Part shown: positions 5,345 to 49,874 of the stretch, in pieces
Numbering within the stretch: position 1 is the first letter of the stretch
Layout of the letters: each line of letters begins with the position of its first letter
Assembly (NCBI GenBank): GCA_013416795.1
Contig: RQSC01000031.1
Coordinates: 343,984-407,983, forward strand
DNA length: 64,000 nucleotides
Source: Prasinococcaceae sp. CCMP 1430
Lineage: Eukaryota > Plantae > Prasinodermophyta
Reading direction: 5' to 3'
Program-made: the position numbers and the translations under genes
The notes under the pieces: model-generated
Databases searched by the model: none
What the model was told of the DNA's origin: nothing
Seen by the model: only the letters and a program-made list of their open reading frames with translations

Positions 5345-7069
5345 GCGCCGAAAGCGAGCAAGCGCAGTGTACGGCGGTGGGATGACGCGGAAACCGCCGA
5401 CAGCGGCGTCAGCGCCGGCGGCAGCGGCGGCGTCAGCGCCGGCAGCGGCGTCAGCGCCGGCAGCGCCGGCGCGTCCACAGCCGATTTTGCCGACGCTGCT
5501 GGCGCGGATGAGGGCATCACCATCCGCATACCTAGCCCCGCGCAGGTGGCGCGCGCCGCGCAGCGGAAGGCAAGCGAACTGCAGGAGAAGGTCACGTCGC
5601 AGCTCGGCGGCGGCGAGCGCTCTGACGCGCAGGAGCAGAAAAAGCGGGCGAAGAAAGCGGCCGAGTCAGCGAAGAAGGCCGAGGCGGCCAAGAAGGCTGC
5701 GAAGGCCAAGAAAATAGGTCCGACGCGCTGCACTTCGGCGCCGCACGCGCTCGTGGTATGCACACGCCGGGCACTCCCTGACGACCGCGCCCCCTCATGC
5801 ACTTGTCGCGCGCCCCCACGCCGCCCGAAACTCGCCGGCGCTTGCCCAGGCGTCCCGCGCTCGGCGCTCCCCCCTGGTAGCGTGGTGCGACGGGTTGCAG
5901 GCAGCACCGGCGGCCAAGCCCAGTACGTCGCCACGCTGCCCAACGGCAAGCTGGTGCGCGTCCAGCCGCCAGGGCTCGTCGACTCCGCCGCTCCGTGGCT
6001 AGCACTTGGCGTGCTGGGCTTCGGGGTGTACAAGCTTATCCAATTCGTCAACGACGGCAGTGCGCGCGGTGTGTTCGCGCGGCAGACCCGCGGCCAGCGC
6101 GTGGTGTACGATCGCACGCTGGGCGGGCGCGCCATCACCCTCAAGGGCGAGGCCGCGCGCCCGCGCAGACGCACGAGCGTATGGTCGGACGCGGCAACTG
6201 CGTCCGAGCGCGGCAAGTCGGAGGCGGAGGTGCTCTCCGATATGGCCGCCGTGCCGTCGTCGCTTTCTGGGAGTGGCGGCAGCGTGCTACCCACGTGGTG
6301 GCCCGAGCCTGTCCAGCGCACCAAGGTGCAGTCTGACTTTGGCGCGGAGGCCGCGCAGACGGTGTGGAGGGGCATTTCATCCGCGAGGCTGTCGGGGCGA
6401 GACCCGTCGTTGCTCGACCTGCAAAAGCTCAGGCAGGTGTGCGACGACTTCGGGGTGGGCGTCAGCGTGCCTTCGGGCACCGAGCGCGACGCGGTGATGC
6501 GATCCGGCGTCAAAGCGGCGGTAGACGCGGTGGAGAGCGGCAGTGGTGGGACGCTGACGAGCGTATCGTCCGCTCGCAGCTTCGTTTCGGGGCTAGCGCT
6601 CGACCTGGGCGTAGAGCCGGAGCGCGCGGCAACCATGCTTGCAGCAGCTGTCGCGGCCAAGTGCCGCGGCTCCATTCTAGGGGCCACCGCGCGCTTGCGC
6701 GCGCAGGATGACCTGGGTGCCATTCGCGCGCTCAAGGGCATGTCCAGACTGCTGGCAGCGTTGCCACCCGCGGAGGGATCCGCCGAGCTCGGCCTCGTTG
6801 CGGACACGCTTGGGCCCAGGTGCGCGCGCGCCTTCGCAGTCGCGCTGCCGCGTGCGCGTGGGTATGCCAGGGCGCGTTGGGATGCATTCTCGAGCGCCGT
6901 TTGCTGACGCGCGCGCGTGCGCGCGCACTGCCTCGCGGGATCGTGCCCGTTCACTTTGTGCAGGGTGAAGCTGAGCGAGCGCGAAGCGCTGCTCGAACTC
7001 TACGCGACTGCCGACGTCGGCGAAACGAGAGCGACCGCTTCGGAGGCACTCGGACTTCGCTCTAGCTAG
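5345..7069 (+). CDS. Conserved green-lineage single-pass membrane protein of unknown function; start unresolved; introns 5718-5900 and 6820-6963
   Basis: TM segment PWLALGVLGFGVYKLI followed by VVYDRTLGGR, LPTWWP, FVSGLALDLG, AAAVAAKCR and ASEALGL, resembling an uncharacterised land-plant family; intron phases are consistent. Confidence 0.65.
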
Positions 7070-7292
7070 CGGTGGCACTGCCACTATAGTAGCGACAGCC
7101 TTTGAATCATACTTCGTAGCTTGATGGTAGCACACGCGACTGCGCGCCAGGGCGTGCCGGCGCGCGCGTGGCTCCCTCGATTTGCGCAGTGCCAGGCGAA
7201 TAGGCGATACCCTCAGCCTTTGGCCGTTCACGTGCGCGCACGGTCGAGGTTGTCTCACGTGTCGTCTTACGCGAGATCGAGGCGCCGCGCCT

Positions 7293-8360
7293 CTAACCTC
7301 GTTGCTGCTGTGTCGCGTCGCCAACCGCTGGAAGCTTGACCTTCGCGCTGTGAGTCAGGCTGGTGTCAGGCGCTGCCATAGCCGAGTTAGCAATCGCGAA
7401 TGCCTCCTTGTCCTTCGCACCCATGAGGAGGCCCGAGTTGGTCGAAAGCGCCTCGATGAATTCGCCAACGTCGATCAAATTGTTACCATCCTTGTCCATG
7501 ATGCCCATAAACACCGCGATGTCCTCGTCTGAAAGGGGCTCTCCGCCAAGCTCGGTCATCACCACACGGAACTCGTCGGCGCTCATGTTGCCGTCTCCGT
7601 CCCGGTCGAAATACTTGAAGGCGGCCTTGAGGAGTTCGAGCTCGTCCGTGGACGAGTCAATTACGTAAAACCACAGATGTAGCGCCTCGGCCCAGGTCAC
7701 GCGGAGCAGCCGCTCGGCGCTCACTTCCTCTTCACTGTACACGCGTGGCAGCGAGCTCGCGGCGGCGCCAGGCAACGCGCGCCCGCCCGCGTGCGAGCCC
7801 TGGCGCGCAACCTCACCGCCCCCCGCGGACGGCCTTGCGCTGGCCTCGTTGACCGCGGCGGCGGCCGCCGCCTCGTGCGCCTCCGAGTTGAGCTGGTTGA
7901 TTGCCTGCATGTTCTCGATAGCCATTTCCGCCCCACCCTCCTCCACATCGTAGTCGACCCCCGGCAGCAGACGCGGGCCGTCGGCGCCCGCGCGCAGGCG
8001 GTCCTCGTTGATCACCGCCCACTCCTCAACCGTCCCCGCGCGTGGGTTGGCGCCGACCATGCGCAAGAAGGTATTCACTTCGTACCAGTAGATGGTGTCG
8101 CGAGTTTTGAGAGCTGCGGCCTTGGGCAGGGGCTTGCCCCCAGCCACCGCCCTGGCGTTGTCGAGATCGGTGGCCTTGGCCGTGCTCTCGAAGAGGCTCC
8201 GCGCGCGCGCGAGCATGGCCGGAGACAGCCGCCCCTCCGCGCTCTTGTCGTTAAAGGGCACGGGGCCTTTCGACTCATCGGCCTTATTAATCTTGCCAAA
8301 GAATGATGACGCACGAGCTTTCACCACCGCACGACCCAGCTGCGGCGGGCTCTGAAGCAT
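7293..8360 (-). CDS. Calmodulin-like protein with a C-terminal EF-hand pair
   Basis: AFKYFDRDGDGNMSADEF and MDKDGNNLIDVGEF EF-hand loops. Confidence 0.8.
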   Translation of the reverse strand: MLQSPPQLGRAVVKARASSFFGKINKADESKGPVPFNDKSAEGRLSPAMLARARSLFESTAKATDLDNARAVAGGKPLPKAAALKTRDTIYWYEVNTFLRMVGANPRAGTVEEWAVINEDRLRAGADGPRLLPGVDYDVEEGGAEMAIENMQAINQLNSEAHEAAAAAAVNEASARPSAGGGEVARQGSHAGGRALPGAAASSLPRVYSEEEVSAERLLRVTWAEALHLWFYVIDSSTDELELLKAAFKYFDRDGDGNMSADEFRVVMTELGGEPLSDEDIAVFMGIMDKDGNNLIDVGEFIEALSTNSGLLMGAKDKEAFAIANSAMAAPDTSLTHSAKVKLPAVGDATQQQRG

Positions 8361-9133
8361 CGTCGGTGCCGCGCCGAGAGTGGCCGCCCCCCTGCGCGCT
8401 TCAGCAGGGCCGGCAGTCTCGCCCACACCGCGTTTAGCGACTGCCGCGCTCAAATCCACCCGCGCAACGACCGCGCTCGCGACGCACGCGCGATCCCACA
8501 CGCCCCGCCTCCCTCACCCGCCGCCCAGAGCTTCCGCGCGCACTCAAACGTCGGCTGCGCAACGTATGCTCCCCTCTCCCCTCCCCCCCAACGACCTCTC
8601 TCTTCCCTCCTCCCTTCCCTCCGCCGCGCCTCGCTCCCCCGCTCCGCGGCGCGCCGCGAGCGCGCACTCGCTCCGCGCGGCCCCGCGCGCGCGCGCACGC
8701 GTTCCCCGACCGACGGGCGGAGCCCGGTTGAGTGAGGAACTCGCTCGGATCGGCCGCCAGCGCTGCATTACGGTATGGACATTAAAGGGTTTGCGAAAGG
8801 CGAACCACACCGAGGAAGGCGGGCCGGGAGCGGAGCGCTGCAGGCCGCTGCGCGCGGGGAGAGGGGGGGTGAAGGGGAGGGGAAGGGGGCGCTGCGGCGC
8901 CGGCACACACCACCGCGGCCGCCGGCGAGCGAGCAGGTGAGCGAGCGAGGCGAGGGGTCCCGCCGACGTCCGCTTCGGGGCCCCATCCCCCGAAGGCGAG
9001 AGTCGCCGAGGGTTGAGCAGGGGCGGGAGAATCTGCCAGGTGCAGCGACCAGGAGCGCCCGCCGAGGGCGCTGGCGGCGCCGTTTGTGAGCAGGTGCGGG
9101 AGGGGGGGGGGTCGACGAGGCGCGGGGACCGTA

Positions 9134-46079: not shown

Positions 46080-46806
46080 ATGCGAGAGGGGGGCGGGGCG
46101 GCACAGGCGGCGCGCGCGCAGGGGCGGACCCCGCGGGCGCGCGCATCGGCCCGGACGGCCGACGATCGGTCGTGGCGCGCGGCGCAGCGGCGCGCAGCAC
46201 CGCGCGCGTTCGAGCTCGGCGACGCGGTGTGGCTGGCCATCCCGGGCGGGTTCGGGGCGCTCGCCGGGTTCTCGAACCTCCGCATTTTGAAGCGCGAGGC
46301 CGAAGCGCGCGCGAAACTCGACGCGGTCGATCCTGCCCTTGCTGCTGATGTCAACGAGGAGAACTTCGCGGTGCCATCGTACAGGTATGGCCTGTTGTCG
46401 AAGCGAGCTGCGGCGCTGCAGTCGGGCGGGCCGGCCGCCGTAGAGGCGGAGATCGAGGCGCAGGCAGCGAAGGACAAGCGCGTGCGCTTTGCGCGCGCTG
46501 GGCCCGAGGGCAGCCCCGAGCGCGAGGCTGAACAGCTCCGATACATGGCTGAGGTGCGGCGGCAGCAAGCAGGCGCGAGGAGAGCGCGCACCCGCGGCGC
46601 CCCACCACTTTCTGTGTTTCGCATGGCACGCCGCTGACAGACTCGCCCCAACGCTCGCGTAGTGGTCGGCCAGCAGGGAGCAGAAAATTGGCGACGGCAC
46701 GCTGATGGGACGAACGGCGGCTGAGTGGGCCAAATTTGCTGAGGACAAGCAGGATACCAACGCAGATGATGAGGGTGCCGACGTAGGAGGCGGACGCTTT
46801 GAGTGA
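46080..46806 (+). CDS. Hypothetical single-TM protein; intron 46554-46662; start uncertain
   Basis: AVWLAIPGGFGALAGF; GTGCGG...GCTGAC...TAG intron gives a clean last exon ending GGGRFE*. Confidence 0.55.
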
Positions 46807-46881
46807 GACGCGTACCGCCGTCCTGTTATTATCAGCGACGCTCGCACGCATCGCGCAAGCGCTGCGCGTGCCGCGTGCCGT

Positions 46882-48783
46882 CTACGCGCGGCCAGCGTCT
46901 CGCCGCCCTTGATCATACGCCTCACCCATGCGAGCCTCGAAGTGTGCCCGTTCGCCGTCCTCGAGCATGAGCTGGGAGAGGACCTTCCAGCCAGGCTCCT
47001 GGGTGACCAATAGGTAGTCGTTTTTCGGGTCGAGAGAGTGCGAGTACGCCCCCATGACGACAGAGCACGCCAGTCGCGCGCGCACCAGCGTTGGTAAGAC
47101 GCGCATCTCGACCTCGTCCAGCCCCGCCGCCGTCATTGCATATCCTCTCATCATCGCTGCACACGCCTCCACTGGGTCCACCTTGTTGAGCGCCTGGTAC
47201 GCGAGGGCGATGGCGATCTCTGCCACGCGCCAGCTGTACACAGCATCGCCGAAGTCGACCACGCCAGCGGCCGCCCCATCGGCGACGAGGATGTTCTGCT
47301 CGTTGAGGTCGTTGTGCAGCGCCTGCTTCGGCAGCCTCTCGGACACAGGCGACACGACTTCCGCAAACTCGCGCAGAGCGCGCGCGGCCAGCGCCGATCT
47401 GGACTCATCGGCAATGCACCCCACGAAGCCCCCCACGGCTGCAAAGCGAGCGAGGTCCCACAAGTGCTCGCGGCGAAGCGCTGGCGGGATAGGCTCCATC
47501 TCGCCCAGCGCACGCGCCACCGTGCCGATGAGCCTGCCACAGTCGACCCAGAGCGCCTCCGTCTGCTCGAGGTCCTCGACCAGCGTCTTGCCCTCAACCC
47601 AACGTAGCAAGCGCACTGCGTGGCGCCCACCGATGTGACCGCTTCCGCCACCACTGCCCCCGCCCTCGCTTTCGCCCTCTCCCCCCGCCCCGCCTATGGA
47701 TACGCCGAGCGCGGTGAACGCCCCCGCGTGCTCACCGCCGGTGCACACGACAGGCGTGGGGCATGGCACGCCCGCGCCCGCCACCGCGAGCATCATAGAG
47801 TTCATCGCCTCGAGTAGCGGTGCGTTGTCGCTCTCGACGCCGTTGTGCACTTTGAGCACGTACCGCGCGCCGCCAGAGGCGTCGCGCACGGCGTAGTTGC
47901 GGTCATCGTACGACACGAGCTCGCGCAGCACCTCAGGAGAGGATACGCCCCAGCGCTCTTCCAGGAGCGACCGCGCGGCCGCGGCTGGCAGCTCAAGCGG
48001 CTTGCGTAGCTTGCGCCTCTCCTCCTCCTCCGCGCAGCGCCGAATGGCGTCGTCGCCCTCGGCCTCGGCATCCGCATGGGCTTCGGCGCCGTCATTCGCA
48101 CCGTCCGGGCCATCCAGCGTGCCGCCCTCGACGAGGTCCCTCCGCTTGAGCTCCACGAGGCAAATCTTGCGGACTCCGCGCGTGATCTTCGACACGGCGT
48201 GCTCGGTGCGCGGCGTCGAGTAGATGACGGCGTCTCCCCTGTCCAGCGAGAGCGGCGTCGGCTCGTCGTTGGGCCCCATCGACAGCACGCCGCCGTCGAA
48301 GTCCTCGCCGTGCTGCGCGCACATGACGATGGTGTTAAAGGAGCTCGTCGGATTGTCGAGGTGCCACGGGCACTCATGGCCGTCCGAGTACGTGATGTGT
48401 CGCACGTCTTGTGCGTGCGTCACCAGCTCCAGCTCCTCGGCGTCAACGCCGATGGCGCCGCCGAAGCCGTCCTTGAGCGACTGGACGCGCTCGAGCAGCC
48501 ATGGGAAGCGCTTCGCCAGCGGCGCGGGTTTAGAGAAGAGCTGGGCGACCGCTGGCTGCCCGGGATCGTACTCGTCGCCCGGCTGGAGCTCCTCGCCGTC
48601 GAACGTGGTGCGGCTCACGCCAGCGCTGCCGCCGCCGCCGCCATCCGCGAACCACGCGTTGAGCTGGTCAACCTCCTCGCGCGAGCAGAAGCCGCGTGCG
48701 ACGGCGTACGCCGCGGGCAGGTGGTCCTGCGCGGCCGCTCCGAAGAGCGCGCGCGACGTCGACGGCCGCGCGTTGCGCAGCAC
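46882..48783 (-). CDS. Fusion of a 2OG-Fe(II) oxygenase and a hydroxylysine kinase (HYKK/AGPHD1-like phosphotransferase); ATG not found
   Basis: WHLD...DFDGG...EHAVSKITRGVR (HxD..H..R), then SYDDRNY, YVLKVHN, HLWDL, HNDLNEQNILV, VDFGD. Confidence 0.85.
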   Translation of the reverse strand: MLRNARPSTSRALFGAAAQDHLPAAYAVARGFCSREEVDQLNAWFADGGGGGSAGVSRTTFDGEELQPGDEYDPGQPAVAQLFSKPAPLAKRFPWLLERVQSLKDGFGGAIGVDAEELELVTHAQDVRHITYSDGHECPWHLDNPTSSFNTIVMCAQHGEDFDGGVLSMGPNDEPTPLSLDRGDAVIYSTPRTEHAVSKITRGVRKICLVELKRRDLVEGGTLDGPDGANDGAEAHADAEAEGDDAIRRCAEEEERRKLRKPLELPAAAARSLLEERWGVSSPEVLRELVSYDDRNYAVRDASGGARYVLKVHNGVESDNAPLLEAMNSMMLAVAGAGVPCPTPVVCTGGEHAGAFTALGVSIGGAGGEGESEGGGSGGGSGHIGGRHAVRLLRWVEGKTLVEDLEQTEALWVDCGRLIGTVARALGEMEPIPPALRREHLWDLARFAAVGGFVGCIADESRSALAARALREFAEVVSPVSERLPKQALHNDLNEQNILVADGAAAGVVDFGDAVYSWRVAEIAIALAYQALNKVDPVEACAAMMRGYAMTAAGLDEVEMRVLPTLVRARLACSVVMGAYSHSLDPKNDYLLVTQEPGWKVLSQLMLEDGERAHFEARMGEAYDQGRRDAGRA

Positions 48784-48906
48784 GCGCGCCTCGCACTCGC
48801 GCTCGCGCTCGCCCCCCGCGCACCCCCCCCCGCGAGGCGAGCGGCGTCCCCGCCGGCCGCGCCGGGACGCACGCGGCCGCCGCCGGGGGGGTCGTCGGCT
48901 TGTTGA

Positions 48907-48929
48907 GGTTAGGGTTGAGGGTTAAGGGT
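48907..48929. promoter_or_regulatory. Degenerate telomere-repeat/telo-box array in a divergent promoter
   Basis: GGTTAGGGTTGAGGGTTAAGGGT. Confidence 0.55.
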
Positions 48930-49874
48930 CGCACTTGTGGACCCTACAAGCGAAGCCGACCCGCTCCCATTCCCATGTGCCAGGCAGGGCCCGCAGCAGT
49001 GAAGGTCAAAACGCGTGCTGCACAGCAGTCACTCTCGACACACACGCACACACAGAGACCGCATGGGCGCCGGATTCGTCGCGAGCGATACGGAATCCAC
49101 CCCGCGCAATGAGGTTCAAAATGACCACGCAAATGGATTCAAAATGGTCCAAAGTTTCGTCAAAACGTGGTGGATTCCCAGCCGCCGCGCAGCCGCCGCG
49201 CAGCGGCAGCGGCAGCGCCGCGGGGGCGCGGCCGCCCGCGCCGCGTAAGCATCGCCTCGGCGCCTCGCCCCCATTTCGGTCAGGACGAAATAGGGTTCGC
49301 AATGCGTCGCTTTTCGAGTGCGATGTGACCGAGGTCTCTCGCGGAGGTCGCGTTGAGGTTTCGCGCCCGCGCGAAAAGAAATCCGCGCGCGCGCCACGCG
49401 CGCTCGAAAGGCGCCACGCGCGCGCGCGCGCGCGCGCGCGAAACCCGAACCGCGCCCCGCGCGAGAGCACGCGTCAAATCGAACGCGACGCGCGACGCAC
49501 TTGAAACCCTATATGATCCTGACCGGAATGACCCGTTCGTAAACCCGCGCGCGCGCGCGGGTTTTGCGCGCGCGGGGCCGGGGCAGGGCGGCCTGGGGCG
49601 GGCCACACTCGCGACGCGGCGGCAGCCGGGGAGGCGGAGGCCGGCGGGGGGAGTTGCGGGAGCGGAGGGAGGGAGGGAGAGCGGGACGGCTGCTCGCTGA
49701 GGCGCGCGGCGGTGGCGCACGGCGCAGCACGCGGCGGCCTTCGTGGGGGCGGCGGGCGGGCGCAAGGACGGGCTTGGGCCACGGCGCTTCCGCCTCTCGC
49801 TTCTCGCTCAGGGGGTGAGGGGTGGGTGGGTGGGTGGAGGGCGCGTGCGTGCGTTGTGCTGGAGTGAGGCAGCA

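Follow-up and report, generated by a model that had tools for sequence, protein, structure and literature searches.

A fused 2-oxoglutarate oxygenase and hydroxylysine kinase-like protein in Prasinoderma: a candidate enzyme for hydroxylation followed by phosphorylation

The kinase HYKK (AGPHD1) was reportedly described together with PHYKPL (AGXT2L2) by Veiga-da-Cunha et al. in 2012. In humans, HYKK is GTP dependent (PMC9961460) and feeds PHYKPL (PMC5200902). A related logic is found in collagen, where lysine is hydroxylated and then glycosylated by LH3 (PLOD3) with COLGALT1, whose EDD-bearing domain galactosylates the hydroxylysine (PMC12003778). In the breakdown of aminophosphonates, the oxygenase of the PhnY* and PbfA pair yields a vicinal amino alcohol, from which the class III PLP enzyme PbfA can eliminate ammonia (PMC8154272). 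Here, we describe a gene in which an oxygenase and an HYKK-like kinase are part of the same protein. The preliminary description of this DNA did not recognize the architecture from characterized proteins, and our search of the open-access literature found no published description of it or of the oxygenase family involved, which appears to be undescribed.

A single gene in two Prasinoderma species

The window (the whole stretch of 64,000 nucleotides that was analyzed) has a GC content of ~68% and contains genes of eukaryotic algal type, among them those for a plastid-type trigger factor, an ACR-like ACT protein and Utp13. On its minus strand, an open reading frame at positions 46882-48783 runs for 633 codons with no internal stops and joins an oxygenase, a linker and a kinase, as had been proposed from the letters alone. 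The features of the gene are the following, with residues numbered as in the full-length protein, P0010:

46798..46881, minus strand: 3' flank, candidate 3' UTR, within a probable RNA contig and overlapping the 3' end of the convergent gene
46882..48819, minus strand: coding portion of the fusion gene within the window, about aa 22-668 of 668; single exon, stop TAG at 46884-46882
46906..48033, minus strand: HYKK-like APH-fold kinase, aa 286-661 (Pfam, alignment and AlphaFold)
47031-47011, minus strand: kinase C-terminal DPxNxYL motif (alignment)
47256-47245, minus strand: kinase DFGD (motif map)
47316-47293, minus strand: kinase HNDLNEQN (motif map)
47862-47842, minus strand: kinase YVLKVHN, with the catalytic Lys at 47853-47851
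47913-47896, minus strand: kinase SYDDRN motif (alignment)
48034..48132, minus strand: acidic linker, aa 253-285 (contig X1-4, Tara contigs and species comparison)
48139..48729, minus strand: 2OG-Fe(II) oxygenase core, aa 54-250, from the QDHLP motif through the last strand
48151..48171, minus strand: last strand of the oxygenase, with the 2OG-binding Arg240 (48171-48169) and, six residues on, the conserved Glu246, a candidate substrate contact
48199..48201, minus strand: distal iron ligand His230 (family alignment)
48355..48363, minus strand: iron ligands His176-x-Asp178 (HLD), invariant in the core family
48388..48408, minus strand: strand with Asp161, Arg163 and Tyr167, which do not vary among core members; candidate residues of the substrate pocket
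48811..48830, minus strand: G-run junction where 210-211 bp are absent; wild contigs carry the 5' leader, the ATG and ~22 codons there

The start that had been assigned at 48783 had to be abandoned, since comparison with two wild Tara metagenome contigs of the same species (L003 and L004) indicated that the GTG found there is not the start codon of the gene. The window's copy contains no in-frame ATG upstream of Met188. Between 48870 and 48790 the window is shorter than L003 and L004 by 211 and 210 bp, respectively, and the ATG and about 22 codons are inside this absent segment. The interval around the junction is 81-85% GC, and the loss is probably an assembly collapse, which we prefer as its cause over a strain-specific deletion. 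The complete protein has 668 aa; sequence analysis found no hydrophobic signal peptide or membrane segment in it, and the enzyme is apparently cytosolic. Two other ways of completing the 5' end were discarded, namely, an intron with a CAG acceptor at ~48728 (the probable RNA contig and the wild contigs are continuous there) and an upstream exon with the true N terminus elsewhere in the window (tblastn found none). The public models that we saw are shortened, so the oxygenase-kinase architecture is hidden in those annotations: the EukProt model P0005 (480 aa) begins at Met188, past the iron ligands His176-Asp178, and UniRef A0A7S3B7E3 (291 aa) covers only part of the kinase.

On both sides of the gene there are other elements worth recording. 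Upstream, at 48903-48925, we found telomere-like or telo-box-like repeats (TTAGGG variants) that are also present in the Tara contigs. Downstream is a convergent neighbor (46235-46841, plus strand) that matches no NCBIfam model and has a GT-AG intron at ~46552-46660 (run X6). The 3' ends of this gene and of the fusion transcript share ~44 nt, and the neighbor adjoins the fusion in the sister species as well (53% identity). On the 5' side of this neighbor, at 46108-46144, a second assembly collapse leaves the window 85 bp shorter than both Tara contigs.

Two genes falsely joined by assembly or gene calling could produce the same frame. In favor of such an artifact, assembly collapses adjoin the gene at its 5' end (211 bp) and near 46108-46144 (85 bp), the identification of run X1 as RNA is a guess (its long contigs fall on genes and leave out the intergenic 48843-49800), and no single RNA contig spans the entire gene, with a 3-nt break at 47676-47678 between contig X1-4 (47679-48805) and a second X1 contig (46798-47675). 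However, X1-4 covers the oxygenase and the linker and reaches into the kinase N-lobe with 0 differences, and the independent Tara contigs L003 and L004 agree with the linker region of the window (47851-48250) with one mismatch in 400 and no gaps. The stretch 48000-48150, where reads had been proposed as a check, is therefore crossed unbroken, and the mis-join at the linker that might have overturned the preliminary description was not found. Its statement that the linker has no GC-run junction was correct; the G-run junction that does affect the gene is at the 5' end, at 48811-48830.

The same continuous frame is also found in other sequences. The cluster of the same species has 16 members, of which at least nine are full length (666-670 aa) and have this frame. 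The sister species (a cluster that includes a UniRef entry from Prasinoderma singulare) carries the same intronless fusion (P0002, 649 aa, 62% identity), which is an orthologue, since the convergent downstream gene and two further neighbors are common to both loci. An artifact is thus largely refuted, and we regard it as very improbable; the oxygenase-kinase fusion is a real, single gene in two Prasinoderma species. Near the fusion, the locus of the sister species (L001) also has, at 6842-8905 on the minus strand, a fused alpha-beta E1 subunit of a 2-oxoacid dehydrogenase that is absent from the window.

Between the two species, the oxygenase has 72% identity (dN/dS of 0.35), the kinase lobes have 62-64% (0.51 and 0.31), and the linker has 32% (0.74); these ratios are Nei-Gojobori counts in which the high GC3 probably depresses dS. 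Judging from these values, both enzyme domains are maintained by purifying selection, which, acting on each domain by itself, does not demonstrate that the two activities are coupled.

The oxygenase and its family

The best Pfam family for all 14 oxygenase members is 2OG-FeII_Oxy_3 (PF13640). Scores of 24.5-26.3 bits were obtained, just below the gathering score of 27 (at aa 131-208 of the 633-codon frame, E value of 5e-5, 24.5 bits). The iron ligands H176, D178 and H230, the 2OG-binding R240, and Asp161, Arg163, Tyr167 and Glu246 are invariant in the core members of the family alignment. The two domains of the protein were folded separately; a combined alignment (A5) had put kinase N-lobes on the oxygenase. 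The AlphaFold model of the oxygenase (pLDDT of 86.8) has a double-stranded beta-helix fold and matches 2OG oxygenases, in agreement with the complete set of HLD, distal His and Arg that had been read from the sequence. Its best match is a transmembrane prolyl 4-hydroxylase (P4H; Z of 15.9, rmsd of 3.9 over 195 aa). P4Hs (Z of 15-16) rank above the mimivirus lysyl hydroxylase (13.9), followed by PolD, OGFOD1, PHDs and LH3 (13.0); with both lysyl hydroxylase folds below the P4Hs, the domain does not classify as a PLOD/LH enzyme, and free-amino-acid oxygenases rank lower than the peptidyl hydroxylases. All these matches have 11-20% identity and differ by about 2 Z at most, so the fold does not specify the substrate. 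A profile search of PDB recovered only PKHD-type enzymes, a search with the single protein gave nothing useful, and 5 of the 14 members had a weak match to HalD (best E value of 0.013). By comparison with PHD2 and BesD, the positions of Arg163, Asp161 and Glu246 presumably line the substrate pocket. By strand position, all three belong to strands of the active site and would fit a substrate that resembles an amino acid.

A search with only the oxygenase found stand-alone proteins, mostly of 220-250 aa and with 45-51% identity, in Hanusia, Vermistella, Creolimax, Sphaeroforma, Salpingoeca, Emiliania and marine metagenomes. The family is small: its profile had only 20 matches at an E value of ≤1e-30 and 41 at ≤1e-10 among 1.84 billion representatives. 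Pattern scans of genome and viral contigs found no bacterial or viral members within the reach of the pattern used. A sub-branch of divergent oxygenases (P0107, P0117, P0103, P0104 and P0098) may comprise noncatalytic paralogues; in several of them the iron ligands are changed and there is a long extension at the N terminus.

Among the 1.84 billion representatives and the members fetched, the kinase fusion was found only in the two Prasinoderma clusters. Only four other clusters, among the fetched members, carry a recognizable second domain, and it is always a glycosyltransferase of family GT25; one of these clusters includes a protein from Haptolina brevifila. In the tree, the oxygenase-GT25 clusters and an Emiliania protein form a well-supported clade separate from the Prasinoderma pair, and the AU test rejects a single clade of all fused oxygenases (p of 1.2e-4). 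The best solved relative of the fused GT25 is COLGALT1 (E value of 2e-8 versus 7e-4 for a bacterial-type GT25). Nevertheless, COLGALT1 is only the best among the few GT25s with solved structures and the Atlas neighbors are generic GT25s, which makes the connection with lysine a lead and not a proof.

The oxygenase-GT25 fusions (L009, L010 and L019) look reciprocally degenerate, with P0102, P0240-P0242 and P0129 on one side and P0094, P0096, P0238 and P0239 on the other. P0102 and P0242 have kept the EDD motif of GT25 and lost the iron ligands, whereas P0094 and P0096 have kept the iron ligands and their GT25 has decayed. This haptophyte-like set may be a split bifunctional system, without signal peptides, that would hydroxylate and then glycosylate.

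We also examined the genes that surround members of both families. Beside stand-alone oxygenases (L007, L008 and L011-L018, several of these loci being short) there was no kinase, GT25 or class III aminotransferase, and at two loci of stand-alone kinases there was no oxygenase. A PHYKPL/AGXT2L2-type lyase had been suggested as a partner to look for, and neither the window nor any fetched locus contained a class III aminotransferase. Neither an aldehyde dehydrogenase next to L010 nor an acyl-CoA dehydrogenase next to L007 could be tied to lysine catabolism.

The kinase domain

The C-terminal domain matches Pfam APH at aa 291-529 of the 633-codon frame (E value of 6.6e-25), and its YVLKVHN, HNDLNEQN and DFGD motifs are where they had been reported, so that the description of a complete APH-fold kinase stands. 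Its AlphaFold model (pLDDT of 89.8) is closest to the N-acetylhexosamine kinase NahK (Z of 28.7), type II homoserine kinase (28.2) and aminopropanol kinase (23.8), all acting on hydroxyls of small molecules (amino sugars, homoserine and aminopropanol). The domain aligns over its full length with stand-alone protist kinases and with an insect (Plodia) protein named HYKK (P0080; 33% identity, E value of 2e-38), with which it has in common the motifs YDDxN, HxDxNxxN, DFGD and the C-terminal GAY...DPxNxY (alignment A3). In UniRef, a fragment from the sister species is named "Hydroxylysine kinase." Among NCBIfam models, PRK06148 scores best through its kinase part (E value of 4e-54), with 184 bits against a cutoff of 1128; this part alone matches, and the M23 and class III aminotransferase domains are absent. 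By motifs and alignment the domain is HYKK-like, but the kinase tree places the two fused kinases together on a separate long branch, with weak deep nodes (78/88) and no supported grouping with animal HYKK. Some stand-alone HYKK-like kinases (P0081, P0083 and P0087) have an N-terminal extension; P0087 matches the Dpy-30 motif (PF05186), and the other two contain a stretch of similar appearance.

Possible functions and comparison with known systems

The reading that we tentatively prefer, while holding it to fall short of probable, is that of a cytosolic bifunctional enzyme that couples the hydroxylation of a small free amine to its phosphorylation, with lysine or a lysine-like amine as the lead candidate. 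The N-terminal oxygenase would hydroxylate the amine-bearing molecule, most likely on the carbon adjoining the amine carbon, to give a vicinal amino alcohol; the kinase would phosphorylate the new hydroxyl with GTP or ATP; and a PLP phospho-lyase encoded elsewhere would remove phosphate and ammonia, leaving an aldehyde. In favor of coupling, the catalytic residues of both domains are intact and agree with the family consensus, and the kinase is nearest to the kinase part of PRK06148 and, by fold, to kinases for hydroxyls of amino sugars, homoserine and aminopropanol, with an insect HYKK as its named relative. The low dN/dS of both domains, the invariant Asp161, Arg163 and Glu246 and the weak HalD matches were counted on the same side, as was KYU-HAAO, a fusion published for P. 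coloniale that joins two enzymes of the kynurenine pathway (PMC7455551). Support also comes from the oxygenase family itself: its two unrelated partners, the kinase and GT25, both tag hydroxyl groups, which is a firmer point than the connection with lysine. The idea of hydroxylation followed by phosphorylation in the preliminary description thus gains from the haptophyte GT25 fusions as far as coupling is concerned, with lysine remaining a lead only. Against a free amine, the top folds are peptidyl prolyl 4-hydroxylases, with the enzymes of free amino acids lower. Moreover, a path from free lysine to aminoadipate semialdehyde by way of hydroxylation consumes O2, 2OG and GTP, and there are less costly ones. 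That no class III aminotransferase was found in the window or the fetched loci also speaks against the proposed pathway.

It is also possible, in our opinion, that two unrelated neighboring genes merged by chance in an ancestor of Prasinoderma and that each domain kept its own job, which would be the salvage of hydroxylysine or some other amino alcohol for the kinase, and for the oxygenase the conversion of the substrate of its family. The restriction of the fusion to one genus, which counts against coupling, would fit this origin, as would the two families not being neighbors at any other locus examined, the stand-alone nature of most oxygenase members and the poorly conserved linker, and purifying selection on each domain is equally expected from it. 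On the other hand, the only other partner found for the oxygenase family also tags hydroxyls, and the fusion has been retained across about 36% protein divergence. An unlikely alternative is that the oxygenase hydroxylates peptidyl lysine or proline in the cytosol, the fused GT25 glycosylating the hydroxyl in haptophytes, whereas in Prasinoderma the kinase would phosphorylate the protein-bound hydroxyl or salvage the free hydroxy-amino acid after proteolysis, as animal HYKK does. The fold ranking (prolyl 4-hydroxylases, PHD-type enzymes, the mimivirus lysyl hydroxylase and LH3), the resemblance of GT25 to COLGALT1, which is active on peptidyl hydroxylysine, and the apparent reciprocal degeneration of the haptophyte paralogues (P0094 and P0096 versus P0102 and P0242) point in this direction. 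Nonetheless, fold matches of such low identity and narrow Z spread do not specify a substrate, the closest kinase folds act on small molecules, and no target protein is known.

To our knowledge, many protists without a known source of hydroxylysine have HYKK-like kinases. The fusion gene links one of these kinases to a specific oxygenase family, on which the GT25 fusions of haptophytes provide a second handle. A broader proposal, which we consider improbable, is that the family represents a novel hydroxylase of lysine or lysyl residues with no sequence relation to PLOD, whose product would be phosphorylated in Prasinoderma and glycosylated in haptophytes; if true, there would be an unrecognized hydroxylysine chemistry in marine algae and unicellular relatives of animals. 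If coupling fails, the Prasinoderma gene becomes one more lineage-specific fusion, of modest interest.

Compared with the known systems, the novelty is in the oxygenase-kinase architecture, found in no other lineage searched and in no open-access paper that we found, while both domain superfamilies and the logic of hydroxylating and then tagging (LH3 and COLGALT1) were already known. The Prasinoderma kinase shares with HYKK the APH fold, the same set of motifs (33% identity to the insect protein) and, by sequence, a cytosolic location, but it carries an N-terminal oxygenase and does not group with animal HYKK with support; animal HYKK, in contrast, salvages hydroxylysine made by separate collagen lysyl hydroxylases. 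The bacterial PRK06148/PRK06149 proteins are also fusions (kinase-M23-class III aminotransferase), and their N-terminal kinase domain is the best match to ours; nevertheless, the partner in Prasinoderma is a putative upstream enzyme, the N-terminal oxygenase, instead of the downstream lyase, and there is no M23 or PLP domain.

The P4H, PHD/EGLN, PLOD/LH3 and mimivirus lysyl hydroxylase enzymes (the PF13640 clade) have in common with the Prasinoderma oxygenase the fold (Z of 13-16), the HxD...H triad and the 2OG-binding Arg, although the latter is <20% identical to them, has its own motifs (QDHLP, QDxRxxTY and RxIxLVE), lacks a signal peptide and is fused to a kinase. With LH3 and COLGALT1 the resemblance is in making a hydroxyl and then tagging it, and the haptophyte members carry a GT25 related to the catalytic domain of COLGALT1; however, the tag in Prasinoderma would be a phosphate, the enzymes are apparently cytosolic, and these algae have no known collagen substrate. 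The pair of PhnY* and PbfA differs in being bacterial, in lacking a kinase step and in being two enzymes from separate gene clusters; the similarity is that an oxygenase generates a vicinal amino alcohol, from which a class III PLP enzyme can eliminate ammonia.
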